Positions 16,819 through 59,014 of a stretch of DNA of 64,000 bases are shown piece after piece. The DNA is taken from positions 151,292 to 215,291 of IMG/VR virus record IMGVR_UViG_3300029908_000004, one strand, 5' to 3'. Positions within the stretch are counted from its first letter, which is position 1. The number at the start of each line of letters is the position of its first letter. The translations under genes and the position numbers were made by a program. Under the pieces are notes generated by a model, which made no database searches, was not told where the DNA came from, and saw only the letters and a list, made by a program, of their open reading frames with translations.

Positions 16819-17270
16819 TGGCTACTACTATAACAACGTTAATACCCCCATCTCCTAATAACCCAAACTCTACGACTGAGATAATAGCTGATTATCGATG
16901 GATGTCCGGGGGAGGTGGAGTATTAATGGATGCCACTGGTGACATCTCTCTAACAACAACCAATATGGAAAGTATAAAGGATATCATCCAGTCTAGACTT
17001 AAGGCTGATTATAGAGGATGGGCTTTATACAATATTGGAGCAGATTTACAGAGTTTTATGGGACAAGTTATTAGTTCAGAACTAACAACATCCTTAAGTC
17101 GTAGAATAATTAGTTCTCTAACTTCTTCATTTCTACCAGCAGGGGCTATATCAATTAGAACGTTAGTTACTGGTGATATGGTACAGGCATTTGTATATGT
17201 AGCTGGTACAATGGTGGCAACAGCAACAACAGATAAAAGTGGGTCTACACTAACGGTGGTAATACTCTAA
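16818..17270 (+). CDS. Baseplate wedge gp25/gpW-like protein
   Basis: GDISLT...IKDIIQSRLK...GW....IGADLQSFMG pattern. Size and position just before baseplate J. Confidence 0.8.
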   Translation: MATTITTLIPPSPNNPNSTTEIIADYRWMSGGGGVLMDATGDISLTTTNMESIKDIIQSRLKADYRGWALYNIGADLQSFMGQVISSELTTSLSRRIISSLTSSFLPAGAISIRTLVTGDMVQAFVYVAGTMVATATTDKSGSTLTVVIL

Positions 17271-18475
17271 TGTCTATTCAAGTTCCATACACTTCCACTC
17301 AAATTTCACAGACTATTCTGAATGGATTATCGAATAGTGGGGTGAGACAAACTACTGCTGGTGGCAAAGCAAGAGCTTGGGCTGACGCTGTGGCGTCAAT
17401 CTCGTCTTCATCTGAACTTCGAGTATTTAATATGATCACCCAGAGCTTCTTAACCACGGCTACTGGTAAGAATCTAGATTTTATAGGTTCTATTTACGGC
17501 GTAATTAGAATCCCTGCACAAGACGCTTCTTCAGACATGACAGATGACAACTTCCAGTTCTATGTGGCTAGTGGAACTTTTGGGGATATTAATAATGGTA
17601 ATGATATAATCATACCTACTGGCACTGCTATTAGTGATGGTAACCCATCTGATCCTTTTTACACAGTTGATTACGAAACCGCTCTCTCAGCCACGTCATC
17701 TTTACAAAACATAAGCGTTACCTGTAGTGTGTCAGGTTCTGGTGGGAACTCTGCTGCTAATACATATATTTATAGTAATTTTACTAACTATGTTAATTCC
17801 ATATATGGATCTTTGTTAGTAACAAATAACTATGGGGTCGTCTCTGGTAGAGATGTTGAAGATGACGATAGTTATAGATATAGAATAAATCTTAAGCTGC
17901 AAGGAACTGGTGGGGCGGCACGAGCTGATTTAACTTTTTCATTACTGCAGGTAACAGGGGTTCAAGATATTGTATTTGAATCATTAGCAGGAACCTTTAA
18001 TGTATATGTGTACGGGATATCACCAAACGTATCTATTGCATTACTTCAACAGGTTCAAGCAATTATTAATGCCAATACAGCGTTCCCATTGACTGGGTTA
18101 GCACTAGCACCAGATTTGATTGGTATAAGTTTGGAGACAACAGTTACCCCAATAAAAGGGCTCTCGTTAGCAGAGCAGAACGCCGCTATGGCAGCAGCGG
18201 CAACAGCGGCAGCAAGCTATATAAATAACTTAGGAGTTGGTAACACGTTAGTTATAAATGAGATATCAGATGTTATGATGAACGCCAGTCAAAACATATT
18301 AGACATAGGTAGTCCTAATAAACCATTACAAAATATATTTATCTGGAGAGATAGAACAGATAACACACGATACAGTAGATTCTTAGTTACAGATTATACC
18401 CCAGCTCTTGGTGAGCGCGTTGTTGTGGAACAATCTATACCAAATCCAATAGCTCTATCTATTAGTAATTCATAA
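17270..18475 (+). CDS. Baseplate J/gp47-like protein
   Basis: FLTTATGKNLDFIGSIYGVIR, IPTGT, GSGGN, GRDVEDDDSYRYRI, VTGVQD, GTFNVYV motifs. Confidence 0.9.
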   Translation: MSIQVPYTSTQISQTILNGLSNSGVRQTTAGGKARAWADAVASISSSSELRVFNMITQSFLTTATGKNLDFIGSIYGVIRIPAQDASSDMTDDNFQFYVASGTFGDINNGNDIIIPTGTAISDGNPSDPFYTVDYETALSATSSLQNISVTCSVSGSGGNSAANTYIYSNFTNYVNSIYGSLLVTNNYGVVSGRDVEDDDSYRYRINLKLQGTGGAARADLTFSLLQVTGVQDIVFESLAGTFNVYVYGISPNVSIALLQQVQAIINANTAFPLTGLALAPDLIGISLETTVTPIKGLSLAEQNAAMAAAATAAASYINNLGVGNTLVINEISDVMMNASQNILDIGSPNKPLQNIFIWRDRTDNTRYSRFLVTDYTPALGERVVVEQSIPNPIALSISNS

Positions 18476-32612: not shown

Positions 32613-33776
32613 ATGTCTACATCACCACTAAATCTTGAAACAATTGAGCTTGTGTCCACTCTAAGAACGGCTCCCTTAAATGGGTCTCCCTCTTCACAAG
32701 ATTATAATGATTGTGAAAGAGAGCAATTAACCGATCTGGCGGCGGTAGTATCGTTCTTAAATGATACCGTCCGTGTTTTACTCAATTCTCTACCTAATAC
32801 CGCGATGTTGCCAATTTCGGATCCAGTTGGGGTAGAAGGTAGAACTATCTATTGCGATACTAGTGATACAAGTTCACTATTCTTTTCCAATGGTTCCCCA
32901 CTAAGTATAGCAGACTCATTAAGAGTATTAAATGGTATGTTACAAACGTTTAAGACTACCCTTAGTAATCAAACGGTTCAGTTAGCAGCGCTACAATCTA
33001 GATTGGCTACCACCAACCAGAATGATGTTTCAGCGGTATTAAATAACTTTTCTGGGCAGATAACCTCTATATTAAATACCATACAGAATTTGGAAGCAGA
33101 GATTAATGCCATAGAAGTAGTAGCAGGATTAGGGGCCGGAGGATCAAACGTATTACCAAGAGCCTTAACAGAAGTGCCGTATTCTGCCACCCCAACCTTT
33201 GATTGTTCTCCTTCTAGTGGATTACTCACCTTCCAAATGGCACTAAGTGGTGATGTAACAGCGCCAGTAGTAATTAATCAATCAAGCGCGCAAGTAGTTA
33301 CATTTTTAATAACACAACAAGGTGTAGGAGGACACGCTTTTACTTGGCCCAGTAATGTACATAACGCAGCCGCGATAAGTACAACGCCTGGTTCTACTAC
33401 ATCACAGAGTTTTACTGTAGATGCCACTGGTAATATGTATCCAATATCGCCAAATACACCAGCACCTATTGTACCTACTACAGGTGCTACTACGGTCCCG
33501 TTAAATTCTAATCGTAATATTACTTCTGCAACGAACAGTGTTTTCCTTTGTACTTCTGGTTCAGGTGGGATAACCTTAACACTACCTAGCGCAGTTCCAT
33601 ACGCTTCGTATGTATACTACATTAAAAAGGTTGATACTGGTGTTGGATCAGTAAATATTATTACAACTAGCAGTCAAACGATTGATTCTAATATAGGATA
33701 CAATTTGGTTAACAAAGGTCAGTTTGTACAAGTCGTGAGTGACGGTAGCAACTGGCAAGTAATCGGAGCTAATTAA
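32613..33776 (+). CDS. Tail fibre-like protein
   Basis: Coiled-coil region, then ITQQGVGGHAFTWPSNV fibre module and C-terminal TLTLP...YIKKVD...SQTID...QVVSDGSNWQVIG domain. Confidence 0.75.
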   Translation: MSTSPLNLETIELVSTLRTAPLNGSPSSQDYNDCEREQLTDLAAVVSFLNDTVRVLLNSLPNTAMLPISDPVGVEGRTIYCDTSDTSSLFFSNGSPLSIADSLRVLNGMLQTFKTTLSNQTVQLAALQSRLATTNQNDVSAVLNNFSGQITSILNTIQNLEAEINAIEVVAGLGAGGSNVLPRALTEVPYSATPTFDCSPSSGLLTFQMALSGDVTAPVVINQSSAQVVTFLITQQGVGGHAFTWPSNVHNAAAISTTPGSTTSQSFTVDATGNMYPISPNTPAPIVPTTGATTVPLNSNRNITSATNSVFLCTSGSGGITLTLPSAVPYASYVYYIKKVDTGVGSVNIITTSSQTIDSNIGYNLVNKGQFVQVVSDGSNWQVIGAN

Positions 33777-36700
33777 TGAAAAATCTACTACGCATCGCGA
33801 TATTTACTATATTTGCTAGCCTTACTCTATTAGGTCAGCAAGGTGGTGTGTCTACCCCTATTCGTTATGGCAGCAGTCTACCCACAGGAGCTGCTCAGGG
33901 ATCGTTGTTTAATGTTTCTGGGACTGGGTTATATAAGTGTAATGCTAGTCCTTGTACTACTTCGGCAAACTGGACAAAGTTAGCTGAACTCGATGCAACC
34001 GGTAATTTTAATTCATCGAATATTTCAGGATGGCAACCTTCCGGGCTACTTGCAATGGGCGACTCAACAGCCAAGGGAGCTTACGGCGGGAACAATATCG
34101 ACGATGGAAACGGATTCAATTACTTTCTTGGTTTGCAGACACCCGGCGTAACGAACATCGTTGCTTGGGACGGTTCTATGATGCCCGATGTGGCTCAGTT
34201 ACAACTGTACCCACTAGGTCCATTCGCCTATGGAGCAGCACCACGAATGACCTTGCAAGACGGTTTAAATGATGGTGCTAACTATGGTTCATCAGTGAAC
34301 CAAAAAGCTATCTTTGTAAAATCACATCTTGCCGTTCTATCGCGTGCTTTAATCCCGTTGAGTAATACAGTCCAAGCCACAAATGGAGCGATTGTACAGA
34401 GTGGGACTTGGGTACTGAATACATCTCGCATTGGCACACTAGCTCCGACGCTTGAGTCGAACGCGAACGGGTCCACGCTCACTGTTCCGATCACGACAAC
34501 TGGCGGACCAATATATGTTCAGTATGAACAATTGGATGGAAATAGTGGTCAGGCGACTCTCGCCATAGATGGTATAACAGTTGATACATTAAACAGTGGT
34601 AACCCCGGAACCGCTGGAAATTGTATATGCACACACAACAATGTCTTCGCCCCACCTATTGGAACGAGTGGAGGACCACAATCAGCACCATTGGCAGGGC
34701 GATACCCAGTGTCCGCTGGTTTTCATATTCTTACCTTCACAGTTACTGGAGCGACCGGCTCTGGCATGGGATTCAGTTTTATCGCTGCAGCAACACCCGG
34801 AACAGGTATCGCAGCATCTACCCCAGTTGCAGGCGGGCCACCTAGCCTTTGGGAAGGCGGAGTAACGAGAACAGAGACATATCCATCAGACCCCACCAAT
34901 GTTTATGACGGAATGATTCAGACTGACCTTTCCTTAGTACAGAACGATGGATTGAATGCCTATTATGTATGCGGCCTTGCGGGAGATTACGCGAGCTTCC
35001 CGGCAAGTCCGATCCAGCCGCTTGGGTGTAGCGACGTAGCCAGTTTCTATCTCGACAACGCGTATGTCCCGATCAGCACTACGGCCTACGATGGCGTATC
35101 GGTTCTGACGGTGGTTTCGACGTTGCCGATCCCCGCTGGGGTGTATGTCGGTGACTATCACACGATCTGGGGAACCACGACGCACACAGAACTTTCAAAC
35201 ACCCACTTCTGGAGCGTTAATAGTATCTCTGGTAACACTATAACATTTAGCCAGCCGGGGTTTAACTCAGTCGCGTGGACTACCACAGCAGATGTAGGGT
35301 CTACGTCGAAGCAACACCACGACGACTTCCATCCAAATGGGAACGACCCAACAACGGGCATTACAGGCGGTTACTGGCAGATGTCCTTGGCTTATAACCA
35401 TATGATGAAGTTGCCAGGAGGCAGTGGGTCCGCGAACTCGTCTTCATCTACAACCAGCTCATTAAACTTGAGTCAAGTCACGCCAAGCGCTACGTTTACT
35501 CTGACTCCGACTTCTGGGGTTGTGCTGTCAAACGGCCAACCTCTTATATTTCCGGCGATGACTGGAAATGTTGGACCATTCTGGGTCTTTAATAACGGTT
35601 TAGTAAGTAGTGCGGTTTCCTTTACAGGTGGGGCAGTAGCCAATCCACATCTTTCAGCGTTATTTCCAATCGCACCGGGTACTGGAGTTTCTTTTGTAGT
35701 CAATTCGGGTATTTACTACAACCCAATTGGTGCTTTCAGTGGAACTAGTGGTTCTTCTGCACCGACTTCTCTTGCTCTGAACCAAGTCTCTGATGCAGGC
35801 ACTGTCACTCTATCGTCCACTTCTGGTGCAGTCCTAACGAATGGGAACGCTGTCGTGCTTCCTGCGTTGACTGGCAATCTCGGCCCATTCTGGATTTACA
35901 ACAACAGCTCAACAGGTAGCTCGATCACTGCATCAGGAGGGGCTATACTTGATGCCCACATACCCTCCACACTCTCAGCCCACTCTGGTATCTCGTTGAT
36001 TGTAAACGGAGGCATTTATTGGAATCCAGTTGGGCAATTTAGTCCAATAGCTTCGCCAACCCTTGCAGATTACACAATAAGCAACCCGTGGAGTGCTAAT
36101 CAAACTTTCCAGAGCATCTACGCTGGGCCTGCCGGCGTGGCTACCAGCGGAGCAAATATAAACAGTTACTACCTGGGCCTGTGCGGATCGGGCTGGAATG
36201 GGTCGGCGGCGGCAAATTTCTGTGGCTACCTCCAAGGCGCAATGGGCACCGGAACGAATCCGGCATTTACCTATAACTTCATGTCCGTGCCGGGTGCTGC
36301 GGCATCTTACATGAACATGTCCAGCTTAACGTCGAAGGGGTTGACACTTCCGCCCAGTACCTTTACGACAAACGGAAGCGCCAACGCTGCGCAAAACACA
36401 CTAGGCCTGAATAACGGCGCTGGAATCACAGTGGCTAACAATCCCAGTTATCCATACGGTACTAGCTTTGCTTGTAACACAGCGACAAGTAGTGCAGTAG
36501 GATGTTCGATGCTTGGTGCATCGGGTGGCTCGGAAGGGTACTTAGGTCTTCCGGCTGCGAATAATTATTATCTTTCGTCTACTACTGCCGGTGTGAGATC
36601 ATGGGTCGCGCCTGCGGTTTATACACTTCCAACACAATATACTATAGAACCATGCTCAGTAGGATTATGGAATGGTGGGGCTGCGATTACAGCCGGCACA

Positions 36701-36979
36701 TATAATTTACCAGCGCGATGTCTTAATGTCTACGGGGTAACGTACACAGCTACAGCCGTTAAATGCTACTCGGATAACAACGGTTCTTCGACTGGAAACG
36801 TAGCGGACAATAGCGCTAATGCCTTATTGACTGGGGCAGTCACAGCAACAAATTCATGGGCAAGTGGTACGGTGAGCGGAACTCATTACACCATTGCATC
36901 GAACGCTTGGACAAACTGGACCTTTGTGGCAGATGGAATTAGTACGGTACTCCGTTGCACAATGACAACAACGAGATAG
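33776..36979 (+). CDS. Signal-peptide-bearing SGNH/GDSL esterase-domain protein (tailspike- or adhesin-like)
   Basis: N-terminus MKNLLRIAIFTIFASLTLLG. SGNH blocks GDS (34058), GLND (34262), DDFHPN (35321). Many Cys residues, tandem ~95-aa repeat, higher GC than flanks. Confidence 0.75.
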   Translation: MKNLLRIAIFTIFASLTLLGQQGGVSTPIRYGSSLPTGAAQGSLFNVSGTGLYKCNASPCTTSANWTKLAELDATGNFNSSNISGWQPSGLLAMGDSTAKGAYGGNNIDDGNGFNYFLGLQTPGVTNIVAWDGSMMPDVAQLQLYPLGPFAYGAAPRMTLQDGLNDGANYGSSVNQKAIFVKSHLAVLSRALIPLSNTVQATNGAIVQSGTWVLNTSRIGTLAPTLESNANGSTLTVPITTTGGPIYVQYEQLDGNSGQATLAIDGITVDTLNSGNPGTAGNCICTHNNVFAPPIGTSGGPQSAPLAGRYPVSAGFHILTFTVTGATGSGMGFSFIAAATPGTGIAASTPVAGGPPSLWEGGVTRTETYPSDPTNVYDGMIQTDLSLVQNDGLNAYYVCGLAGDYASFPASPIQPLGCSDVASFYLDNAYVPISTTAYDGVSVLTVVSTLPIPAGVYVGDYHTIWGTTTHTELSNTHFWSVNSISGNTITFSQPGFNSVAWTTTADVGSTSKQHHDDFHPNGNDPTTGITGGYWQMSLAYNHMMKLPGGSGSANSSSSTTSSLNLSQVTPSATFTLTPTSGVVLSNGQPLIFPAMTGNVGPFWVFNNGLVSSAVSFTGGAVANPHLSALFPIAPGTGVSFVVNSGIYYNPIGAFSGTSGSSAPTSLALNQVSDAGTVTLSSTSGAVLTNGNAVVLPALTGNLGPFWIYNNSSTGSSITASGGAILDAHIPSTLSAHSGISLIVNGGIYWNPVGQFSPIASPTLADYTISNPWSANQTFQSIYAGPAGVATSGANINSYYLGLCGSGWNGSAAANFCGYLQGAMGTGTNPAFTYNFMSVPGAAASYMNMSSLTSKGLTLPPSTFTTNGSANAAQNTLGLNNGAGITVANNPSYPYGTSFACNTATSSAVGCSMLGASGGSEGYLGLPAANNYYLSSTTAGVRSWVAPAVYTLPTQYTIEPCSVGLWNGGAAITAGTYNLPARCLNVYGVTYTATAVKCYSDNNGSSTGNVADNSANALLTGAVTATNSWASGTVSGTHYTIASNAWTNWTFVADGISTVLRCTMTTTR
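35455..36042 (+). repeat. Tandem ~95-aa domain duplication inside the SGNH protein
   Basis: SLNLSQV..TLTPTSGVVLSNG..PAMTGNVGPFWVFNN..GIYYNPIGAFS versus SLALNQV..TLSSTSGAVLTNG..PALTGNLGPFWIYNN..GIYWNPVGQFS. Confidence 0.9.
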
Positions 36980-36986
36980 GAGATTT

Positions 36987-37958
36987 ATGAAACAACTACT
37001 CTTAATTTGTATAATACTATGTGCTGGAGCTCTTCATGCGGCGACTTGGTATGCGGATAGTGGGACAGCCAATGCTAGCGCAATTACGTGGCACGCCACT
37101 TCCGGAGGAAACTGCGTCACTGGGAGTGGAGCAACGCTGGCTTGGGGCAGTGGTACGAGCACGGATGTCTTCGACTCCAACGGCTGTTCTGCTATCGCCA
37201 TCACCACCGAACCGGGGTCAGGCTGGAGCGGAGCCAGCGCTGGAGTATGTGGCACTGGGGGCACTACTCCAACCATTCAGACGAACACGACGAATGGTGG
37301 TGGATTCACTTATGCAACTGCAACCAATATCATTACACATATGAACGTCACAGCCACTAAATCACCAGCGCTAGTTGTGTCAGGAACCAGTGGTGGTGGA
37401 ACTATATGCGGTTATATCACTGGAGGCAGTGTAGCTTCCGCTTATGGTGTATCTACCACTCATGGAACGGTGGCTCTATATATTATTGGTGGTATAACAG
37501 GTGGGACAACATCGTCAACTTATGGGTATTACAGTGTGTCTGGAAATGGTCTTACAACCATAATTGGCAACGTGACCGCAGGTAGCGGAAGTGGATCATC
37601 CTATGGTATGAATCTTGTGGGGACCGGGGCAACTACTATTATTGGCAACTGCATAGGTTCAAATACAACTGCAGCTACAGGATGTAATACTGGTACTTCC
37701 ACTATTACACTCACAGGCTCATTGATTAATGGATTAAAAGGACTGGGTGCACTGACTCCAGTTCTATTTACCCCTTCAGCTACTAGTTACATTCTCTATC
37801 CGAAGGATGCTAGTTATACGCTTGGGGTTGTAAATAGCCATGCTACGGTGGTGCCAGCTGATCCGGGTGCTGCTAACGTTCGAAGTGGAACCGTTTATGG
37901 ACCGTTCACTGGTACAATGAGTAGTACTGGTGCTGTTAGTTCCGAGAGTAGTTGGTAA
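36987..37958 (+). CDS. Signal-peptide-bearing Gly/Thr-rich protein (beta-helix-like)
   Basis: MKQLLLICIILCAGALHA signal with probable A|A cleavage. Repeating IIG.ITGG....YG units, six Cys in the mature part, AGGAG RBS. Confidence 0.75.
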   Translation: MKQLLLICIILCAGALHAATWYADSGTANASAITWHATSGGNCVTGSGATLAWGSGTSTDVFDSNGCSAIAITTEPGSGWSGASAGVCGTGGTTPTIQTNTTNGGGFTYATATNIITHMNVTATKSPALVVSGTSGGGTICGYITGGSVASAYGVSTTHGTVALYIIGGITGGTTSSTYGYYSVSGNGLTTIIGNVTAGSGSGSSYGMNLVGTGATTIIGNCIGSNTTAATGCNTGTSTITLTGSLINGLKGLGALTPVLFTPSATSYILYPKDASYTLGVVNSHATVVPADPGAANVRSGTVYGPFTGTMSSTGAVSSESSW

Positions 37959-37986: not shown

Positions 37987-38403
37987 ATGGGAAGAATTAG
38001 AAAGCCGAAGATAAGACGTCCTCCACGCAAATCTATACCATATAGCGCGATACGTAAAGCTAATCGGCGAAGACCTAGAAGTAGTTTAGAAATCACAGTA
38101 GGTGGGTGGTTAAAAGAGGAAGAAATCCCATTTGTGCGAGAGAAAGCAATAGGAAGATGCCACGTAGATGTTTTCCTACCTCCACGCACTATAGTAGAAT
38201 TAAATGGTTGTTATTGGCACGGCTGTATGATTTGTAATAAGGAGCCAACCCAAAATCAGAAAATAGCACAGATAAAAGATGGTCGACGATACGCCTATTT
38301 CAGGAATCGTGGCTATGATCTAATAGTTATTTGGGAATGTGAAGTAAAGAAAGAGCCTAATAGAGTAAGAGCTATGCTAAAAACTCTAGCTAATCAAGGA
38401 TAA
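37987..38403 (+). CDS. Vsr/DUF559-like endonuclease
   Basis: SSLE, HVDVFLP, IVELNGCYWHG, KD..R, GYDLIVIWECE. Confidence 0.88.
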   Translation: MGRIRKPKIRRPPRKSIPYSAIRKANRRRPRSSLEITVGGWLKEEEIPFVREKAIGRCHVDVFLPPRTIVELNGCYWHGCMICNKEPTQNQKIAQIKDGRRYAYFRNRGYDLIVIWECEVKKEPNRVRAMLKTLANQG

Positions 38404-38405
38404 AT

Positions 38406-38936
38406 ATGTTCACACCAATAGGTAGCTATACATTAGGACAAGTTGGAGATGTAGGCGAAGGCGCACTGCAAATATTTGCTCAGCATGATAAGTTTGGGGC
38501 ATTTGCTAAAAGAGTTTTCCCCTTTATAGCTTTAACAGATATAGCTGCGTCTACGATATATGGTAAAAGAGGCAACAAAGTCGCCTCTGGTCTTGGTGCT
38601 GCTGCTACAGCAGTAACAGGTTATGCCACAGTAACAGCATTTGCAACTTTAGGACAGGCGATAATCCCAATTCCGGGTTTAGGAGCAGTAATTGGTGGTG
38701 TAGTGGGTGCAGCGGTTAATATTGGTATGGACAAGAGCATTAGAAGAAATGTAGAATCTGCTGTCACTGAGTTCAAAGACGTTGGTGAATACCAAAAACG
38801 AATGCATTTCGGTGGTAACTACGAAGATAATGAAATAGCATATACAATGCGGCAGAAGGCAGCTCAAGAGATGGGCTCTAGTCTTTTAAATAGTAGGCAA
38901 TATTTAGGTAAGGAAGGAGCTCTACTCCATCAGTAG
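38406..38936 (+). CDS. Hypothetical virion protein with Gly-rich hydrophobic segment
   Basis: IIPIPGLGAVIGGVVGAAV hydrophobic segment. C-terminal AYTMRQKAAQEM...SRQYLGKEG. Confidence 0.7.
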   Translation: MFTPIGSYTLGQVGDVGEGALQIFAQHDKFGAFAKRVFPFIALTDIAASTIYGKRGNKVASGLGAAATAVTGYATVTAFATLGQAIIPIPGLGAVIGGVVGAAVNIGMDKSIRRNVESAVTEFKDVGEYQKRMHFGGNYEDNEIAYTMRQKAAQEMGSSLLNSRQYLGKEGALLHQ

Positions 38937-38945
38937 AGAAAACTA

Positions 38946-39848
38946 ATGAGTGACTATACAACACAACAGCTATCACAGATGGTAGACGCTTTAACACAGC
39001 AGGTGGCTGCTTTAGACGGGCAAGGTTTGCCCACTGGAGCGTATGGGGTCACCCAGACTTTGTCTCGTGAAGTAAGAGGGATGACAACTACCCTAAGCCA
39101 ATATGCTTTAGTGGTACAGAGCCAGATAGATGACTTAAAGTCTGCACTTGCTGTCGTGCAAACTGCTCTAAGCAGTATAACAACCTCCAAAGGAAGTAAT
39201 GCCGGTGTAGTTCTTCAGGTTAACAACGCAAATGGTTCTTCACAAACATTACTGAATCTACAAAATAGTGCTAGCGTTAATTTTACTGATGTTGGTAATG
39301 GAAACATCGTAGCCACTATTAACCCACAAGCGACTACCGCAGGTGGCAACAACGGTCAACTGCAGTGGAATAATCAAGGAGCTTTCGCTGGTGTGTTAAA
39401 CAGTGGGATTGATGTTAATGGTGTTTTATCCATTGAAGATCTAGTCGTTCCTAATGTTTCAATTACTAGCACACTTAAAGATTCAGAAGCTTCAGTAGGG
39501 GTCAATGGTCAAATTCTTACCTCTACAGGTAGTGCTGTGGTTTGGGTCACACCTCCAAGTCTTTCTATAGCCTCAACAAATGTGGACCGCCCACTCCTTA
39601 TCACAGATGGGCTGCTATTGTGTACACCGGGTTCAGGAGAGGTTACCATTACGTTGCCGGACGCTACCACCCTTCTAAGTAAAGTGTATTACATCAAGAA
39701 GGCAGATACGGATGTTGGAATTGTGAACATTATAACTATTAATAGCCAAACTATAGATATATTACCAAACTATCAACTTCTTAACAAGAATCAGTTTGTA
39801 CAGGTAGTTTCAGACGGTAGTAATTGGCAGGTCATCGGGGCAAATTAG
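38946..39848 (+). CDS. Tail fibre-like protein
   Basis: Coiled-coil N-terminus, GGNNGQLQWNNQGAFAG and GVNGQILTSTG..VVW fibre motifs. C-terminal domain paralogous to that of 32613-33776. Confidence 0.75.
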   Translation: MSDYTTQQLSQMVDALTQQVAALDGQGLPTGAYGVTQTLSREVRGMTTTLSQYALVVQSQIDDLKSALAVVQTALSSITTSKGSNAGVVLQVNNANGSSQTLLNLQNSASVNFTDVGNGNIVATINPQATTAGGNNGQLQWNNQGAFAGVLNSGIDVNGVLSIEDLVVPNVSITSTLKDSEASVGVNGQILTSTGSAVVWVTPPSLSIASTNVDRPLLITDGLLLCTPGSGEVTITLPDATTLLSKVYYIKKADTDVGIVNIITINSQTIDILPNYQLLNKNQFVQVVSDGSNWQVIGAN

Positions 39849-39882
39849 GGTTCAATCTTATCCGGTTAAAAAAAAGGTCGAA

Positions 39883-40009
39883 GAAACTTCAAGTAGCATT
39901 TTTTGATATCACTTGTTAACAATAGAAACAATAAACAAATAAAACTATAACAATATACAATAGATATCAAATCTGTAAGAGATATAACCAAGGATTATAA
40001 AGAAGTTTC
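39883..40009. repeat. AT-rich nested inverted repeats enclosing ACAATA direct repeats at the strand-convergence point
   Basis: GAAACTTC(39883)/GAAGTTTC(40002) and TTTGATATC(39902)/GATATCAAA(39963). ACAATA at 39919, 39928, 39950, 39957 plus two variants. Confidence 0.6.
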
Positions 40010-40020
40010 CTATAAATAGC

Positions 40021-40057
40021 AACGAAGAACAAATTAATGATTTATTTGTTCTTCGTT
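40021..40057. terminator. Probable bidirectional terminator hairpin
   Basis: 14-bp perfect stem AACGAAGAACAAAT / ATTTGTTCTTCGTT with 9-nt loop between convergent operons, T-rich tail on + strand. Confidence 0.65.
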
Positions 40058-40086
40058 ATTTGTTTTTACTGGATAAGTAAAGCCCT

Positions 40087-41238
40087 CTAAACAGAGGGCT
40101 TTTTTCTAAGGCGTACTGCGTGTCCTTTAAGATATAGCATGACTTCAGAATATCTTTTCTTAGCCGTTTGGCTATCACAGCCAAGAACGGCACCAACATC
40201 CTTCCAACTATATTCAAGAACCCACACCATTCGAAGGATATTCCTTTCCATAGGTGTTAGGTTCCTGAATAACTTGTCATTAGTTTCCTGAACCCAACCT
40301 AAAGACATTTCACTTATGTCTAATGGTTGTCTTATTAAGACTGTATCCGCTGACCAAGATTGCCCATCGGAATCAGTGAAGTCACCGTCTGCGTTAGGCA
40401 TCCCGAACTCTTTAGAAGAGAAGACATCATTGTCAGGGGCTCTTCCACTTCTATAATCGAGTTGCAACATGCCTGCTTGGGACTCGATGGATGACATTTC
40501 TGCTGAGATGTATTCATGTAAGTAGTATCTGAAGTACATCTGGATGAAATAGGTGAGACCAACCGGCCCAGACTCGAAAAAGGACTTGGGGGGTGGCCAT
40601 GAAAGCCTTTTATATCCTGTGATTTTCTTCTTCGGCCCAGCAACACTGGAGAGAAAACCTTTGCGCACCAGCAAGCGAATACAGCCAGTACTATCAAAAC
40701 CGAGTCTGGAGGTAATTTCCGCTGCTGTAAATTCGATTGTTGATTTGCCCCTACGTTTTGGAAACGATTCGTTGATTGTTTCGTGTACCCTTCGTACCTT
40801 GTCTGTATACGTTGGGTCATACTTATCCACAGCTCTCATTAAACATAGGACAAGTATATCATATATATCATCACAAGTCATCTGTTTAAATGCTAGGTGT
40901 AGTGTTTTACATACGTTCTGAAGGACGGGCCTAGAGATGGTTTGTTTATCCATCGTCTTTGGTACTAAAGTTTTGAGGAAGACTACAGTATCCCTACCAG
41001 CAGCAGACTTTATAGGAGGCATATTACCACGAACGATCATATGTAAATATTTCATCAGATAACCATGAAAATACTCCATCAATCGTAATAGGATAGCTTC
41101 CCTATCCGCTTCTGGGGGTAGAGAAGCATAGGTAACCCCTAGAAGATTAACTTCTTCACGGTTATTGAAATCCTCCTCAACTGGAACCCTCCATTTAGAG
41201 GCATAGTGAGAAGAACTTAAGTTTGAATTTCTATACAA
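40087..41238 (-). CDS. sigma70-family-like transcription factor with insertions in region 2
   Basis: Region 2.2-like DDIYDILVLCLMRAVDKYDP, 2.3-like LTYFIQMYFRYYL, region 4 HTH LTPMERNILRM...SWKDVGAVLGCDSQTAKKRY. Start reassigned to TTG 41238, which has AGGAG 7 nt upstream. Confidence 0.75.
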   Translation of the reverse strand: MYRNSNLSSSHYASKWRVPVEEDFNNREEVNLLGVTYASLPPEADREAILLRLMEYFHGYLMKYLHMIVRGNMPPIKSAAGRDTVVFLKTLVPKTMDKQTISRPVLQNVCKTLHLAFKQMTCDDIYDILVLCLMRAVDKYDPTYTDKVRRVHETINESFPKRRGKSTIEFTAAEITSRLGFDSTGCIRLLVRKGFLSSVAGPKKKITGYKRLSWPPPKSFFESGPVGLTYFIQMYFRYYLHEYISAEMSSIESQAGMLQLDYRSGRAPDNDVFSSKEFGMPNADGDFTDSDGQSWSADTVLIRQPLDISEMSLGWVQETNDKLFRNLTPMERNILRMVWVLEYSWKDVGAVLGCDSQTAKKRYSEVMLYLKGHAVRLRKKPSV

Positions 41239-41288
41239 TGACTTGCTCCTAGTCCCCACCAGAAGCAATTGTACCCAGTAACATCTTT

Positions 41289-52947: not shown

Positions 52948-54963
52948 TTAATCATCGTCTCCGAACTCACCACCCTTGCTACGTATCCCAAGTTCTCTAC
53001 GCAAGGCAGCTTTGTCGGCGGCTAGTGCCCTCCATTCAGGTGGGCAATAACCTAGGTGGTCAACGTAGATAAGCGATAGCTTCGTCATACGTTCAACTTC
53101 TTCAGTGTTAGGTAGGATATCGTCCATAGCCTGATTCCAGTCTGCTATTGACATGGAATAGTCTGGTTTACCATCTGACTTTACTCTACCAGCAAACGCT
53201 GCATTGTCTAACGCTTCTTTCAGAACAACTTCAATCTCAGCACCAGTCCAAACACGTTTGCTATCATACAACAGACGACCTAAACCATTATCAGCTGTCT
53301 TCTCTGTAGCTGCTACTTCCTTAGCAAACTTTACACCATGCTTACGAAGTAACGCAGCCAAGATGTCAAGCCTTCCCTTACTATCACCCTTCTGAGGGGG
53401 TAGCGCTGGCACCTTGGCATCAAAACGACCAGACCTAATCAGAGCACCGTCAAGTAAATCTGGACGGTTAGAAGCACCGATTACTACAACCCTACCAGTT
53501 CTAGATTCATCTGACAACCAAGTCATGATAGAGTTAAATACTCTAGCGGAAGTTCCAGAATCTCCAGCAGAGGTCCTACCAGAACTTAGTACTGAATCCA
53601 TTTCATCTAGGAATACAATACAAGGAGCAGCAGAGTCTACAGCTTCCAAGAACTTACGTGTCTTCTGTTCGGTTTCACCTACAATTCCACCGAATAGACG
53701 ATCCAAGTGTCCAATCATAAAGTTCATCTTGGCTTCCTTGGCTAGAGCTTTGGCAATGACAGTTTTACCTGTACCCGGGGGTCCAGTCATCAACATACCA
53801 CGGGTACATAGACGAGCATTACCTTGTTGTAGTGGAATGATAACTTTACGCTGGAAATATCTCTTCAAGTGTTCGTGCCCACCAATTTGTTCAAAGCCAT
53901 ACTCAGGCTCAAAGAACTCAACCAAGCCTTGATATTCATCTTCCAAAGCTCTCTGCTTCTGTTCACGAACCAAACGGAAGTCGATAGCTTCTCCAGTGAG
54001 CCAAGATTTCATGATTACAAATTCCATCTGTCTTCTTGACATACCAGCAGATTGAACAGCAAATTGATGGAGATCAAATCCAGTAGCCAAGTTCACCTTG
54101 GAGACTTCATTACTACCTATAACCATAGGTTTGCCCTTAGCAGCTACACTATTTTCAATGGTTCTGCTGAAGTTGGTTAGCCACTCCTCACGTTCTGTGA
54201 TTGTTGGCTTTCCAATAAGAATAGTGGAGATACCAACACCGCCTCCACGAAGGGACTCGTGGATTTCAGATAAGTGACGTGTCATAATAATGATTCTATT
54301 ACGGTTACCTAACTGTTCATCCCTCGCCCAGTTACGGATATGAACAATCTGTGGGCGATCGGCATATAATTGTGCTATATCCCCCTGAGGAAACAAAGAA
54401 TCACCATCGGTAAACAACACAGTCAACAACAACTCTGGTTGAGTAGCCTGATTATTCATTATCTTCATCTCGTTAGAACGATGAATTTCTTTATTAGCTA
54501 TGAACCAGCGTTGTAAAACTAAACAACAATTTTCTATCTGGGTAGGTTTATCCCAACCAGCCGGCCAGTTCTCTACCGTTTCCCCATAGAAGGACTTCAT
54601 AGTGTCTACCCAAGCAGTGTGACTATTCTTGTTAGCAAACTCTAGTCCAGAGGACAGGTTAAAAGAAGCTAATATCCTAGTGGTATTACGATTTGTTTTT
54701 ACTTCCTGCTCATCTTGTATACCACGACCCACTTTGTCAGACACACTGCCTCTAATTTCACGAGCCACATTATCGTCCATAGCGATCGCTATAGTACGAT
54801 CAATTGGTTGTCTGGCTCCTGTGTTGTCACAATAATCGTTGATGTTACCATGAACGATGAATACGTGGGCAATCTTGGATCTATAATCACTTTTGATCGT
54901 CTTGATGAACTCCGGGATTGGTTGCTGTTCCGGTTGCTGCTTCTTCACTGTCGCAAATGCCAT
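52948..54963 (-). CDS. Classical-clade AAA+ ATPase (Ycf46/Cdc48-like) with degenerate N-terminal ATPase domain
   Basis: FEQIGGHEHLK, GPPGTGKT, pore loop GIVGETE, VFLDEMD, ASNRPDLLDGALIRSGRFD, WTGAEIE. N-terminal HVFIVHGNIND...LFTDGDSLFP degenerate domain. Confidence 0.9.
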   Translation of the reverse strand: MAFATVKKQQPEQQPIPEFIKTIKSDYRSKIAHVFIVHGNINDYCDNTGARQPIDRTIAIAMDDNVAREIRGSVSDKVGRGIQDEQEVKTNRNTTRILASFNLSSGLEFANKNSHTAWVDTMKSFYGETVENWPAGWDKPTQIENCCLVLQRWFIANKEIHRSNEMKIMNNQATQPELLLTVLFTDGDSLFPQGDIAQLYADRPQIVHIRNWARDEQLGNRNRIIIMTRHLSEIHESLRGGGVGISTILIGKPTITEREEWLTNFSRTIENSVAAKGKPMVIGSNEVSKVNLATGFDLHQFAVQSAGMSRRQMEFVIMKSWLTGEAIDFRLVREQKQRALEDEYQGLVEFFEPEYGFEQIGGHEHLKRYFQRKVIIPLQQGNARLCTRGMLMTGPPGTGKTVIAKALAKEAKMNFMIGHLDRLFGGIVGETEQKTRKFLEAVDSAAPCIVFLDEMDSVLSSGRTSAGDSGTSARVFNSIMTWLSDESRTGRVVVIGASNRPDLLDGALIRSGRFDAKVPALPPQKGDSKGRLDILAALLRKHGVKFAKEVAATEKTADNGLGRLLYDSKRVWTGAEIEVVLKEALDNAAFAGRVKSDGKPDYSMSIADWNQAMDDILPNTEEVERMTKLSLIYVDHLGYCPPEWRALAADKAALRRELGIRSKGGEFGDDD

Positions 54964-55981: not shown

Positions 55982-56215
55982 TTACAAGAAGTTTGGGTCA
56001 ATTGGGTCGAATTTGTCATAGTTATTATCATCATCTGAGTCTTTTCGTCCGTCAGGCTTTGTAGGTTTAGCTACTCGTGGCTTAGCGATTGGAGTTGAGC
56101 AATATTTCAGACCATTCTCATGAACCCAAATTCCCCACATACCTTTCTCTTTAGAAATAAGACTCTTACAAAAGTCGCATAAGCCATAATTTTTGTTTTT
56201 AACTACTGATGCCAT
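55982..56215 (-). CDS. Small Zn-finger-like protein
   Basis: CDFC...WVH.....C. GTG start in the track, or ATG at 56209. Confidence 0.6.
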   Translation of the reverse strand: MASVVKNKNYGLCDFCKSLISKEKGMWGIWVHENGLKYCSTPIAKPRVAKPTKPDGRKDSDDDNNYDKFDPIDPNFL

Positions 56216-56241
56216 AGTTTATCCCTTCACGTCCTCGTGCT

Positions 56242-56655
56242 TCACTTCGTCCCTCCATTGGCTTTCCCGGCAAGCGCCGCCCGCGCAATCTCGTTTCCCC
56301 TGCTATTTCCGAAGTCCGGTTCGTTGCCAAGACGCGCCAGCTTATCTAATGCCGCCTCCAACTCTACGACGCGGGCCTTGAGCGCGGTATTCTCCTCCCT
56401 CACTCCTGCGAGTGCCGTTGCATTGCGAACCTTCTCTAAATCTCGCCACTGTTCCCATGCCGCCACGCGGGCCTTGAGCGTGGTGTTCTCGGCCTCCAGC
56501 GGGGCGGCGATATGGGCAGCGTAGGCGGCGTGGTCATGATAGAGTACGAAAGAACCTTCGGGATGCTCGTAAGCTTGTATTTCATCGCCGCCTTTGAATA
56601 CCAGAACACGGTATCGTTTGATCGGCTCCGCTGGCGTTACCTTCGGGGCAGTCAT
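56242..56655 (-). CDS. Coiled-coil hypothetical protein
   Basis: HPEGSFVLYHDH motif. ENTTLKARV/ENTALKARV duplication (DNA 56465-56490 and 56369-56394). Confidence 0.7.
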   Translation of the reverse strand: MTAPKVTPAEPIKRYRVLVFKGGDEIQAYEHPEGSFVLYHDHAAYAAHIAAPLEAENTTLKARVAAWEQWRDLEKVRNATALAGVREENTALKARVVELEAALDKLARLGNEPDFGNSRGNEIARAALAGKANGGTK

Positions 56656-57677
56656 CTTGTTTCCTCTTTTCCAATATGCATACCCAGCGCAATCCGTGAT
56701 CCTCTATGTCGTTCGTTGGCATATGTCCTCGGTTGAATCTGGAAGTCAATCGGAAGTCCTGTAATCTTTGACAGCCGTTCCGAAATAGCAACAGTCAGCA
56801 GCAGCCACTTCGCATCCTGTTCCCAGCATCTACCAGCGCCGGGAAACTCTGTGGCAAACTGTTCGTCCGACATGATGAACCGCACATCTACATCACGCCA
56901 GTCAGGACGATCAAGGGATGATCCGACAAGGTAGCACCCCCAACCGCCGAATGCCTCGGTGAGCTGGCGGCACGCCGTTTCGAGTGCAAAGATGGCCGGA
57001 GCACCAACGTAGTTACATTTCTTGCGCGGTGCTACTTCGGGGTCAGTCGTCTCCGGTGCGGGACTGCCATGTGCAGCACACGGCAACTTTCCGTGGCAGC
57101 AATCGCAAGTCATTGGCGGCGTTACCTTCGGGTCAGGCTGCACGATCGGCTCCGGCGCGGGCTGGTTGGCCTCTGCCGGATCATGTTCGACAATACGTTT
57201 CAGGATGTTAGATGCATCGAGGTGCGCGTAAGCGTGCTTTGGGCTGGCCTCCGACTTCTTTATTCCACGCGCTGGGTCAGGCATGTTCTCTTCTGCGAAC
57301 CGCTTGTCGTGCTCCGGATTATTTCCTCCGAAGATGTCTTCGTAAGGCGCGTCCGGTATCTTCGTCGCAATCTCATATTCCGCAAGGCATTCCGGTGAGT
57401 GACTGCGCCCATCCGTGCAGCCACAATTCTTTCCTTTGCAGGGCGGTAGTGTTTGATGTATGGCCTCCGCTGTTATAAACCGATCACCCTTGCTGCGTAC
57501 AGGTTCGGCGGAATCCCATACAAACCCGAGTTCCAGTGCAACGGACTGCCACGCTCTGTTAGCGTTCTCCTGCGGACTAGATGGCTCCCCGCACTGGACA
57601 GCGATGTACGGAACAGGTTTACTCGCGCCAAGGATGCGATCCAATTGCTGCTGTGATAGCTCAAATTCCTGTCTCAT
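56652..57677 (-). CDS. Mosaic protein with C-terminal Pol-beta-like nucleotidyltransferase motif
   Basis: CYLVGSSLDRPDWRDVDVRFIM (GS...DxD), later PIDFQIQ. Start at ATG 57677 (ATGA overlap, GAGG RBS). Confidence 0.65.
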   Translation of the reverse strand: MRQEFELSQQQLDRILGASKPVPYIAVQCGEPSSPQENANRAWQSVALELGFVWDSAEPVRSKGDRFITAEAIHQTLPPCKGKNCGCTDGRSHSPECLAEYEIATKIPDAPYEDIFGGNNPEHDKRFAEENMPDPARGIKKSEASPKHAYAHLDASNILKRIVEHDPAEANQPAPEPIVQPDPKVTPPMTCDCCHGKLPCAAHGSPAPETTDPEVAPRKKCNYVGAPAIFALETACRQLTEAFGGWGCYLVGSSLDRPDWRDVDVRFIMSDEQFATEFPGAGRCWEQDAKWLLLTVAISERLSKITGLPIDFQIQPRTYANERHRGSRIALGMHIGKEETR

Positions 57678-57982
57678 GAATTCCTCTTTCCTGCCGCGTC
57701 CGGTAGCTTCGGCAGAAACTTTGAGCACAACATCCCGCTAGGATGATGCACCGGAAGCCCCGGCCCAAGAATCGAACTGAATGGAGGCGTGATCGTTTTC
57801 TCCCCACGGTCGCACGCTTCACACGATACGTCGGGCGCGTCCGGTATCTTCGGGATACTGCCGCCAAGCTTGCTGGTGGTAACCGATGGTTCAGGTACGC
57901 ACCCACATAGAAAATTCCCGTTGATCGCGGCTTGCCCGCACATCGGACAATGAGAAAAGCTCGTGTAATGTTCGACGTTCAT
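57674..57982 (-). CDS. Cys-rich small protein
   Basis: CPMCG..CGC and CEAC..H....C. Confidence 0.6.
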   Translation of the reverse strand: MNVEHYTSFSHCPMCGQAAINGNFLCGCVPEPSVTTSKLGGSIPKIPDAPDVSCEACDRGEKTITPPFSSILGPGLPVHHPSGMLCSKFLPKLPDAAGKRNS

Positions 57983-58149
57983 AATTTCCCTTCCCTTATC
58001 CGTTGGATCAAACTCGGCTTAGGCTCTGGAGGTTTCTCGTTCTCGTTAATCCAGAATCCACAACGGGCGCACATCAGCTTGCAATCTCCCCCATACTTCA
58101 GGATTCGCTTCTTTGGTGGGCATGAACACCAAATTGGATCGTAACTCAT
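57979..58149 (-). CDS. 56-aa Zn-finger-like protein (absent from the ORF track)
   Basis: MSYDPIWCSCPPKKRILKYGGDCKLMCARCGFWINE...GKL*, with ATGA overlaps at both ends. Confidence 0.7.
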   Translation of the reverse strand: MSYDPIWCSCPPKKRILKYGGDCKLMCARCGFWINENEKPPEPKPSLIQRIREGKL

Positions 58150-58553
58150 CCCTTCTTCCCTTCTGCCGCGTCAAGGGCGGCGAGGATTGCGTCAGCGGCT
58201 TCCTTTTTCAAGCTCCTACTACCTTGGAAAAAATACTGCAACTTATTAAGCAATATCTCCTGCCTCTTATTGACTGGCACAAGGGAATCATTGCGGCAGG
58301 CAACAAAATCACGAAGAATCGTGGTGGCCAAGCCTCCATACTGCTTACCTGTTGTGGCTTCTATCGTTTCGACAGCGTCGCCTATTTCCTCCGGTGTTGG
58401 TGGCTCCAGTAGCTTGCCGGGTAGGTGGTCGGCTGCGGTTTTAATAACGATACGCCAGCCTGACCACTCAGGACTGTATGAGTATCCCGCTTCGTTCAGT
58501 GCTTTGATACTCGCTTGTTTAGCTGCTTGAAATACCTCTTCTGGTAGATTCAT
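58146..58553 (-). CDS. Hypothetical protein
   Basis: 135 aa, ATGA coupling, GGGGAG RBS. Confidence 0.7.
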   Translation of the reverse strand: MNLPEEVFQAAKQASIKALNEAGYSYSPEWSGWRIVIKTAADHLPGKLLEPPTPEEIGDAVETIEATTGKQYGGLATTILRDFVACRNDSLVPVNKRQEILLNKLQYFFQGSRSLKKEAADAILAALDAAEGKKG

Positions 58554-59014
58554 TTAGTCTTCTTCTCCCCTTCGTGGGCAGCGGGCAAGCGCTGTAGTCT
58601 ATCAATCTCTGCTGCGATGAGTGCACCCGCTTTCACGAGATTGCGGATAGGGTCAGGCGACGGCTTCCACCACTCATCACTCCATTTTGGGGGCCAGAAA
58701 ATCTCGTTTAATGGAGCGCGCTCTGGGTGCAGACAACCGTTCGCGCACAAATAACACTTGGCAACAGCGGTCAATTCGCAATCACTGTGTTCATCGTCAT
58801 GTTCTGGCGTCCAACCCTCCACTGTGATCTGCCGTTGCCGCTCCGCCGCGATTAGAGCCGCTCCGTTTGGAGTTGATAATGTTTGCCCAACTCTACTAGG
58901 GTGAGGAGCTTGACATTCACAATAATTATTTTGACAGCCTAATGCCCATACACTTTCATCGTGTGCTGAATGATCACCATTCTTACAACTATCACAGATT
59001 GTTGGGTTACTCAT
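58550..59014 (-). CDS. Chimeric hypothetical phage protein
   Basis: AT-rich Cys/His N-terminus fused to a GC-rich IAAERQRQITVEGWTPEHDDEH...NLVKAGALIAAEIDR domain common in phages. Confidence 0.75.
   Translation of the reverse strand: MSNPTICDSCKNGDHSAHDESVWALGCQNNYCECQAPHPSRVGQTLSTPNGAALIAAERQRQITVEGWTPEHDDEHSDCELTAVAKCYLCANGCLHPERAPLNEIFWPPKWSDEWWKPSPDPIRNLVKAGALIAAEIDRLQRLPAAHEGEKKTK

Follow-up and report, generated by a model that had tools for sequence, protein, structure and literature searches.

How could two proteins that appear to carry bacterial export signals come to be encoded in the middle of the tail fibre genes of a phage, when phage tails are thought to be built wholly inside the cytoplasm? 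This question is raised by two neighboring genes of an uncultured 215-kb jumbo phage from peat metagenomes (IMG/VR record IMGVR_UViG_3300029908_000004), which we examined in a 64,000-nucleotide stretch of that record (positions 151,292 to 215,291, here termed the window; all coordinates below are those of the window and all features are on the plus strand). An earlier note, based on the sequence alone, had described the two products as adjacent, Cys-rich proteins with Sec signals that lie between fibre genes and are GC-richer than their flanks, and had proposed that they are either receptor-binding parts that are exported, disulfide-folded in the periplasm and joined to the virion at lysis, or host-surface modifiers for superinfection exclusion.

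The observation was confirmed. The first gene, P1 (33776..36979), encodes 1067 aa and the second, P2 (36987..37958), encodes 323 aa, and both contain the Cys motifs that had been noted (CNASPC, CIC, LCG...FCG and ACN...GCS). They lie between two fibre paralogs, fibre A (32613..33776, 387 aa, without a signal peptide) and fibre B (38946..39848, 300 aa), which share a 68%-identical C-terminal 81 aa, and fibre B closes the module. The N-terminal ~205 aa of fibre A are conserved in related jumbo phages, whereas its C-terminal ~80 aa (33540-33773), ending ...SDGSNWQVIGAN, are the domain that we propose below to be a docking site. The GC content of P1 and P2 is 0.48-0.51 against 0.37-0.42 in the flanks, and this does not reflect amino acid composition alone, as GC3 is 0.44 in P1 and 0.36 in P2 against 0.27-0.30 in every neighboring structural gene. 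The one part of the description that was overstated is "Cys-rich": P1 has 14 Cys (1.3%) and P2 has 8, two of them in the signal peptide, while neighboring genes range from 0 to 1.7%. What stands out instead is that both mature proteins have an even number of Cys, arranged in close, conserved pairs.

Both N-termini follow the organization of Sec-type signal peptides, having a Lys/Arg n-region, a 13-residue hydrophobic core that is too short for a membrane span, and small residues at -1 and -3, with predicted cleavage at G20|Q21 in P1 (signal peptide aa 1-20, 33776..33835) and A18|A19 in P2 (aa 1-18, 36987..37040). In a crude heuristic screen of the genome only 15 of 316 ORFs had this appearance, and P1 and P2 were the only ones in the structural module. 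Retention of the signal among homologs had been named beforehand as a check, and it proved to be high in both families: 99 of 130 P1 relatives are signal peptide-like, 83 of them with Gln at +1 against a 3.5% Gln background, and 26 of 30 P2 relatives are signal peptide-like, 25 of them with the site before a conserved (A/T)TWYA. In addition, one relative that had been called without a signal peptide gains one from an upstream GTG start. A different possibility is that these segments are not cleaved but are retained as structural or membrane-anchoring helices, for example as trimerization plugs or as anchors that hold fibres at the inner membrane until lysis. AlphaFold does model them as helices (residues 2-18 in P1, followed by a low-confidence linker), and cleavage is inferred from sequence alone; however, we consider this explanation very unlikely given the ~13-residue cores, the preceding Lys/Arg and following small-x-small sites, the prevalence of Gln as the next residue in the P1 relatives, which is a signature reported for signal peptidase I substrates (PMC5837995), and the fact that in P2 the conserved mature sequence starts exactly after AxA.

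In order to determine what the two proteins are, we examined the domains of P1 in turn. The signal peptide is followed by an N-terminal module (N-module; aa 21-85, 33836..34030), a small beta domain with a C55/C60 hairpin that is 56-68% identical to modules in the proteins P0064, P0086 and P0088, each of which has different cargo. The next region (aa 85-548, 34028..35419) is an SGNH carbohydrate O-acetylesterase interrupted by CBM6/35/36-like beta-sandwich inserts, which the earlier note had not recognized. A complete catalytic set is present: block I is AMGDSTAKG with the nucleophile S97, block II has G133, block III is GLND with N165, and block V is D516-D-F-H519. In a 24-sequence family alignment G95 and S97 are invariant, and N165, D166 and H519 are invariant or nearly so. 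P1 itself gave no Pfam hit at E<=0.1, although 17 of the 24 N-domain relatives hit Lipase_GDSL_2 (best 3.6e-12). Structural alignment of model residues 85-548 with VIA-align showed the three-layer alpha/beta/alpha SGNH fold, with Z 13-18 against SGNH esterases (rmsd 2.4-3.3 A over 168-187 residues), including phage G7C gp63.1 at Z 13.1. Foldseek returned SGNH+CBM esterases and hemagglutinin-esterases, and the best viral folds were phage minor tail and tail spike proteins.

The remainder of P1 consists of two tandem ~100-aa repeats (aa 556-660 and 660-756, 35441..36043) that are 45% identical and poorly modelled, a Ser/Gly/Ala/Thr-rich region (aa 757-954, 36044..36637) that was modelled only at pLDDT 24-40 and has Cys pairs 803/816 and 900/910, and a C-terminal domain (CTD; aa 955-1067, 36638..36979). 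The CTD is a confidently modelled beta-sandwich that defines a large unannotated family, in which C960 and C982 are invariant; P1 also has C997 and C1061. Cys at positions 1024 and 1061 are mutually exclusive (20:20), as would be expected of alternative disulfide partners, although disulfides could also form after release. The CTD is not a recognizable type IX secretion sorting domain, as no Por_Secre_tail or CHU_C hit was found in P1 or in 40 CTD relatives, the only Pfam match being a weak BIg21 hit in five of them. P1 and P2 are also not supported as targets of a diversity-generating retroelement (Mtd-like), since no second copy of any part of the segment and no RVT_1 match was found.

Mature P2 (37041..37958) is a right-handed parallel beta-helix, also not recognized in the earlier note, with conserved Cys pairs 43/67 and 222/233 and an aromatic C-terminus. 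Its model has a pLDDT of 87.6 and aligns at Z 11-14 with tailspikes, pectate lyases, AlgE/AlgG and autotransporter passengers, although Foldseek alone was not significant. No Pfam or PHROG hit was obtained for P2; conserved D60, N65 and D75 lie near the N-terminal cap, but they do not assign P2 to a lyase or hydrolase family.

Evidence that could not have been seen in the sequence alone came from comparison with other phages, in which three gene linkages recur in unrelated genomes. First, a gene for a CTD-bearing protein is followed directly by a P2-like gene in 7 of 8 contexts, in sipho-, myo- and jumbo-phage backgrounds and in an Acidobacteriota MAG. Second, all five N-module proteins that were looked up, plus that of locus L020, lie directly after a non-exported protein ending in the fibre A C-terminal domain, and the cargo differs each time; the loci with this arrangement are L017, L018, L178, L179, L020 and L008. 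Third, a divergent but syntenic relative, L016, has an unrelated pair of signal peptide proteins (2247 aa and 249 aa) at the same slot. It is important to note that the fibre C-terminal domain in general is not tied to signal peptide genes (12 of 34 downstream genes are signal peptide-like against 29 of 128 control ORFs), and that adjacency could reflect the boundary of a recombination cassette rather than docking. The genes are translationally coupled to the fibre gene: the P1 ATG overlaps the fibre A stop (TAATG) with GGAG 8 nt upstream, and P2 has GGAG 4 nt upstream. Exact-match contigs occur in three peat metatranscriptomes, one of them spanning the P1/P2 junction, although contigs from RNA libraries may derive from DNA.

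The segment is a horizontally acquired mosaic cassette, a further point that the earlier note did not recognize. The first 90 codons of P1 (signal peptide plus N-module) have native GC3 (0.30), whereas the cargo is foreign (0.46-0.47), as expected if the anchor is kept and the distal part is swapped. Directly after P2 is a Vsr/DUF559-like homing endonuclease gene (37987..38403) with native codon usage, a possible vehicle for cassette mobility. These features raise the possibility that the pair is simply a recently acquired secreted carbohydrate-active moron or auxiliary gene cassette, perhaps carried in by the endonuclease, that benefits host or phage by degrading environmental or matrix polysaccharide and has no specific link to the fibre. 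In its favor are the foreign codon usage, the location of all relatives in high-GC loci, including one in an Acidobacteriota MAG, and the fact that secreted prophage CAZymes are a known category. However, this explanation appears improbable, as the slot also holds an exported pair in the divergent relative, the N-module has native codon usage and a conserved partner domain upstream, and no separate promoter or terminator signal above chance was found.

The interpretation that we tentatively favor, although the evidence leaves it somewhat short of even odds, is that P1 and P2 are late-operon products that are exported by the host Sec pathway, fold with disulfides in the periplasm, and together form the exchangeable distal part of a three-part host-recognition module. 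In this view a non-exported fibre has a C-terminal domain that acts as a socket, an exported protein plugs into it via its mature N-module and carries variable cargo plus a conserved CTD, and a second exported protein is tied to that CTD. Signal peptide cleavage and oxidative folding would be followed by docking of the N-module onto fibre A when holin and endolysin action merges cytoplasm and periplasm. On the virion, P1 would then bind and deacetylate a surface polysaccharide in the way that esterase fibres such as G7C gp63.1 do, with P2 as a glycan-binding or glycan-cutting partner. Our analyses established the gene structure, the domain identities, the intact catalytic residues, the conservation of the signal peptides, the Cys covariation, the three gene linkages and the foreign mosaic codon usage, whereas actual export and cleavage, docking, presence in the virion, the timing of assembly, and catalysis on and identity of the substrate are inferred. 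Weighing against this interpretation, no tailed phage is known to add Sec-exported parts to its virion and literature searches found no precedent, the phage encodes no export or folding helpers of its own, and one P1 relative sits in a bacterial chromosome beside a transposase with no phage genes nearby.

The main rival, which we consider less likely but which is not excluded, is that P1 and P2 are exported but never join the virion, and instead act in the periplasm or on the surface of the infected cell, deacetylating or otherwise altering the polysaccharide that the phage uses as receptor. The infected cell and its debris would then stop adsorbing phage, giving superinfection exclusion and protecting the progeny in the way a receptor-destroying enzyme does. 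Supporting this are the conserved signal peptides, an SGNH-plus-inserted-lectin layout that is that of viral receptor-destroying hemagglutinin-esterases, the lack of a recognized virion-attachment domain in P1, and the existence of a stand-alone bacterial homolog. Moreover, the pairing of an SGNH protein with a periplasmic beta-helix recalls periplasmic polysaccharide-modifying proteins such as AlgG and VexL, which are among the fold matches of P2, phages of P. gingivalis are reported to encode Q-rule exported proteins proposed to modify the host surface (PMC10367356), and about 5% of prophage CAZymes carry signal peptides (PMC13507307). Conversely, this rival does not explain why the mature N-module is always paired with the fibre C-terminal domain of the preceding non-exported gene across very different genomes, why such proteins can be up to ~2500 aa long with tail fibre-type repeats and depolymerase domains, or why they are translationally coupled inside fibre operons. 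The interpretation offered in the earlier note is thus partly supported: export is well supported by the conserved signal peptides and the disulfide-type Cys covariation, and the consistent position of the N-module after the fibre A C-terminal domain, as for docking partners in branched fibres, together with the resemblance of the enzyme core to virion-borne esterase fibres, favors the first of its two alternatives.

Tail fibre assembly is a textbook cytoplasmic process, and if a widespread set of receptor-binding modules is exported first, host-range determinants could no longer be predicted in the usual way, as signal peptide proteins are usually filtered out as non-structural or counted as auxiliary CAZymes. 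It would also explain how phages can borrow disulfide-dependent secreted bacterial enzymes without re-engineering them, and would make a testable link between lysis timing and virion completion. If instead the pair acts only in the envelope, it would be a phage analog of the receptor-destroying hemagglutinin-esterases of animal viruses. In either case, the proposed socket-and-plug pair and the CTD-plus-beta-helix pair are two unannotated conserved modules with hundreds of members. More speculatively, and again as a possibility that we hold to be less likely than not, a whole class of tailed phages from peat and soil, with relatives in Acidobacteriota-type high-GC genomes, may route the distal parts of their fibres (esterases, beta-helix depolymerase-like proteins and giant multi-Cys proteins) through the host Sec pathway, to fold oxidatively in the periplasm and snap onto cytoplasm-built virions through a dedicated socket-and-plug pair (fibre C-terminal domain and exported N-module) only when lysis merges the compartments, which would be a two-compartment assembly line for a tailed phage.

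Among known systems, the closest are the branched esterase tail fibres of N4-like and related phages, such as G7C gp63.1 docked on gp66 and those of Pectobacterium phage Possum (PDB 4qnl, PMC9569702, PMC10743462). Both these and P1 have an SGNH polysaccharide-deacetylase domain inside a tail fibre module protein, and both are modular, with an N-terminal part matched to the preceding fibre or adaptor gene and exchangeable distal cargo, the match in P1 being inferred only from comparative genomics. Those fibres are not known to have a signal peptide and are assembled in the cytoplasm, whereas P1 has a Sec signal, paired cysteines, a different N-module, a CBM-like insert and a distinct CTD, and there is no detectable sequence similarity outside the SGNH core. 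The viral hemagglutinin-esterases (torovirus and coronavirus HE, influenza C/D HEF and ISAV HE) are likewise SGNH O-acetylesterases interrupted by a beta-sandwich lectin-type insert (Foldseek E 3e-6 to 7e-5) and mature in the secretory pathway with disulfides, as is inferred for P1, and HE proteins have a receptor-destroying function; however, they are glycoproteins of enveloped eukaryotic viruses, and with ~10% identity the resemblance is at fold level only, an analogy in layout and not family membership. Pairs of a tail fibre and a downstream tip partner or chaperone (T4/T2 gp37-gp38, lambda Stf-Tfa and P2 H-G) resemble the CTD and P2-like pair in the conserved pairing of a fibre C-terminal domain with the product of the next gene, but our P2 is a 300-aa beta-helix with its own signal peptide, is unrelated to Tfa or gp38, and is linked to the CTD by gene order rather than by demonstrated binding. 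Exported envelope modifiers encoded by phages, including the T5 Llp and Cor-type exclusion lipoproteins and the Q-rule proteins of P. gingivalis phages, also have host-type signal peptides, with Gln at +1 shared by the P. gingivalis phage proteins and P1 relatives. Those proteins are small, of unknown or blocking function, and are not enzymes embedded in fibre operons with a conserved partner domain on a fibre; furthermore, neither P1 nor P2 has a lipobox ([LVI][ASTVI][GAS]C), and the Cys residues in the P2 signal peptide are not conserved in its family. Lastly, secreted bacterial carbohydrate esterases with CBM (CE2, CE3, CE20 and CEX 6hfz) and prophage CAZymes with signal peptides (PMC13507307) share with P1 the signal peptide plus SGNH plus CBM35-like architecture, to which P1 adds a fibre-linked N-module, repeats and a phage-type CTD, as well as its location in a tail fibre operon.

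The window closes a 215,291-bp IMG/VR virus record that CheckV estimates as complete and that has a GC content of about 39%. A baseplate-wedge gene is located at 17270-18475 and is followed by a long run of + strand structural genes, and a protein with a Lon-like ATP-dependent protease domain (4089-5153, +; phrog_4871, 1.7e-85) lies among the large structural genes. The two ORFs of interest were found exactly where an earlier note, made from the sequence alone, had placed them, with P1 at 33776..36979 (1067 aa) and P2 at 36987..37958 (323 aa). The ATG of P1 overlaps the stop codon of the preceding fibre gene (TAATG), both genes have a GGAG a few bases upstream, and scans for promoters and terminators gave no signal that exceeded chance. 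The two genes are therefore read as part of the late fibre operon. The flanking genes, fibre A (32613..33776) and fibre B (38946..39848), share a 68%-identical C-terminal 81 residues. Between P2 and fibre B are a Vsr/DUF559-like homing endonuclease (37987-38403, +; phrog_13076, 6e-9), which directly follows P2 and has a native GC3 (0.27), and a 176-aa Gly/Ala-rich ORF (38406-38936, +) with two hydrophobic glycine-zipper-like stretches and only a weak hit to phrog_33148, which could be a membrane protein sitting beside the pair. Right after the fibre module, a sigma-factor-like gene (40087-41268, -; phrog_351/1740) opens the divergent minus-strand block.

The observation in the earlier note, of two neighbouring, GC-richer genes with signal peptides and closely spaced cysteines in the tail-fibre module, held in all but one respect, the description of the proteins as "Cys-rich". 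Both N-termini have a Lys/Arg n-region, a 13-residue hydrophobic core and small residues at -1/-3, features that a crude screen of the whole genome identified in 15 of 316 ORFs, the other 13 being small genes elsewhere in the genome. Several small minus-strand genes outside the window (genome coordinates C1:49261-49746, 54236-54895, 87053-87649 and 39856-40167) also start with predicted signal peptides, three of them with Gln after the predicted site, which implies that the phage would export more proteins than these two. Conservation is the stronger argument. All aligned P2 relatives start with such a peptide, ending in AxA just before a conserved (A/T)TWYA, and 26 of 30 full-length members passed the screen. 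Of 130 full-length P1 relatives, 99 passed, and 83 of those have Gln right after a candidate site against a 3.5% Gln background. One relative that had been called without a signal peptide gains a classic one from an upstream GTG start, and alignment of P1 with proteins that share its N-terminus places the predicted site at G20|Q21. An alternative in which these segments are uncleaved structural helices remains as a lesser rival. With regard to the cysteines, P1 has 14 in seven close pairs and mature P2 has six in three pairs, a density of 1.3-2.5% that barely exceeds that of neighbouring genes, and the label "Cys-rich" is therefore overstated. The pattern is still telling, as in 40 C-terminal domains (CTDs) of the P1 type C960 and C982 are invariant and Cys at positions 1024 and 1061 are mutually exclusive 20:20, as alternative partners of one disulfide would be. 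GC content is 0.48-0.51 against 0.37-0.42 in the flanks, and GC3 is 0.44 in P1 and 0.36 in P2 against 0.27-0.30 in every neighbouring structural gene, although the first 90 codons of P1 have the native value of 0.30.

Direct Pfam and PHROG scans of P1 and P2 were blank, and megablast and tblastn against 50,697 deposited phages gave no match. An exhaustive protein search with P1 returned 386 relatives, which form one family for residues ~80-560 and a much larger one for the last ~110 residues. The first family keeps all four SGNH blocks, and 17 of 24 members hit Pfam Lipase_GDSL_2; P1 itself has S97, G133, N165 and D516-x-x-H519. The AlphaFold model is confident for residues 30-545 and 955-1067, and residues 85-548 match SGNH esterases at Z 13-18, including CE2 and CE3 esterases, a sialate esterase and the phage G7C fibre gp63.1 (Z 13.1). 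Foldseek added SGNH+CBM35 esterases, CBM6/35/36 modules and the viral hemagglutinin-esterases, which share the layout of an esterase split by a lectin-like insert, while among predicted viral structures the best matches were phage minor tail and tail spike proteins. Residues 556-756 are two repeats, 45% identical; our visual impression that these resemble the fibre C-terminal domain was not supported by BLAST and was dropped. Residues 757-954 lie outside the confidently modelled regions.

The CTD is a predicted beta-sandwich with no Pfam or PDB sequence match, the profile search against PDB having returned nothing below E 0.9. A T9SS-type sorting domain was considered for it, but no family match was found. 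A weak Mtd_N look-alike for the CTD had also prompted the idea of a DGR target, which was rejected because there is no template repeat and no reverse transcriptase. P2 folds in the model with pLDDT 87.6 into a regular solenoid that matches right-handed parallel beta-helices at Z 11-14, among them tailspikes, pectate lyases, AlgE/AlgG and autotransporter passengers. Nearly all P2 relatives end in an aromatic residue (W, GYAY, WGF or WAF; window 37941-37955), which is reminiscent of the C-termini of outer-membrane proteins, although the predicted fold is a beta-helix and not a barrel.

Comparative genomics provided new evidence in the form of three linkages. Firstly, the CTD is paired with P2: in the window and in the loci L003, L006, L008, L009, L011 and L013, a signal-peptide protein ending in the CTD is followed directly by a P2 homologue, that is, in 7 of 8 contexts examined. 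The backgrounds are a lambda-like siphovirus, other phage contigs, a prophage edge and an Acidobacteriota MAG, and in several of these loci the adjacent large fibre-like genes (NHL, K1-lyase_C and Big_2 types) carry signal peptides too. In the smaller phage contigs L003 and L007 every large fibre-like gene upstream of the lysis cassette (five in L003, four in L007) does so, and these phages may have no non-exported receptor-binding protein at all. A complex prediction of the CTD with mature P2 returned no verdict (score 0.00) and is counted neither for nor against binding. Secondly, the mature N-terminal ~65 residues of P1 form a module (the N-module) that is shared at 32-68% identity with proteins that carry other cargo, one of these cargoes being pectate-lyase-like. 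All five module-bearing proteins that could be looked up lie directly after a protein with no signal peptide that ends in the fibre-A-type C-terminal domain (45-66% identity), the locus L020 is a sixth case found from the other direction, and in L008 the 232-aa gene upstream of the trio with signal peptides carries the same domain. This tie is specific to the N-module, since the fibre C-terminal domain as such is widespread and followed by many kinds of genes, and its general link to downstream signal-peptide genes is weak (12/34 against 29/128 in the control, based on crude ORF calls). Thirdly, the slot is conserved: L016, a 188-kb relative with 37-46% identical structural genes and a fibre-A homologue, carries at the same position a 2247-aa and a 249-aa protein, unrelated in sequence to P1 and P2, both with signal peptides and many cysteines. 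As L016 has the same structural gene order but a GC content of 0.556, about 16 points higher, this jumbo-phage lineage spans hosts or genomes of very different base composition. A search for a relative with an empty site, using the flanking genes as anchors, found only the same phage from another sample.

All relatives of P1 and P2 lie in loci with 55-61% GC. The raised, patchy GC3 of the cargo, combined with native GC3 in the first 90 codons of P1 (signal peptide plus N-module) and a homing endonuclease next door that may have helped move the neighbouring cassette, indicates a mosaic, horizontally acquired cargo on a resident anchor. A generic secreted CAZyme moron is a lesser rival in this context, given that signal peptides are reported in 5% of prophage CAZymes (PMC13507307). 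A second GC-rich island (56000-59000, -; GC 0.50-0.56) contains a 358-aa ORF (56652-57728) with GC3 0.55 and no PHROG hit, and is probably another foreign insertion. The signals regarding the host disagree. Gln at +1 is described as a Bacteroidetes feature (PMC5837995), yet Shine-Dalgarno motifs precede 105 of 191 genes (55%), compared with 28 of 191 in a control window, and the only genome hit for P2, from a scan of genome contigs with a tight alignment, is an Acidobacteriota MAG. It may be that the Gln bias at +1 extends to the hosts of these peat phages. The phage DNA is present in at least 20 peat metagenome runs, and short exact-match contigs occur in three peat metatranscriptomes, one of them spanning the P1/P2 junction, which is compatible with expression but does not prove it.

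The interpretation in the earlier note, that the proteins are either exported receptor-binding parts that join the virion at lysis or host-surface modifiers, is partly supported, and between the two we tentatively favour the former without considering it more likely than not. In this view P1 and P2 would be exported by Sec, cleaved and folded with disulfides in the periplasm, and the N-module would then dock on the C-terminal domain of fibre A once holin and endolysin breach the inner membrane and wall. On the virion, P1 would act as a receptor-binding and deacetylating fibre tip, as in G7C-type branched fibres (PMC9569702, PMC10743462), with P2 associated through the CTD. The domain identities, the intact catalytic residues, the conservation of the signal peptides, the covariation of the cysteines and the three linkages come directly from our analyses, whereas export and cleavage, docking, timing and substrate are inferred from sequence and comparative evidence alone. 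The phage encodes no signal peptidase, DsbA, thioredoxin or glutaminyl cyclase of its own. The main rival, which we consider less likely, involves the same export but with action confined to the envelope of the infected cell as a receptor-destroying or exclusion system. This fits the hemagglutinin-esterase analogy and the reported Q-rule proteins of P. gingivalis phages (PMC10367356), but it leaves the pairing of the N-module and the fibre domain unexplained.

P1 shows the tested defining features of SGNH esterases and P2, in its model, those of the beta-helix fold, but neither can be filed in a known phage protein family by sequence. Literature searches found no description of Sec-exported fibre modules in tailed phages, and two-compartment assembly, if confirmed, would be categorically new. 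As proposed here, the system would work like a branched esterase fibre, but it differs from one in having predicted Sec signals on the distal parts, a new putative socket-and-plug pair (the fibre C-terminal domain and the N-module) and a new CTD-plus-beta-helix pair.
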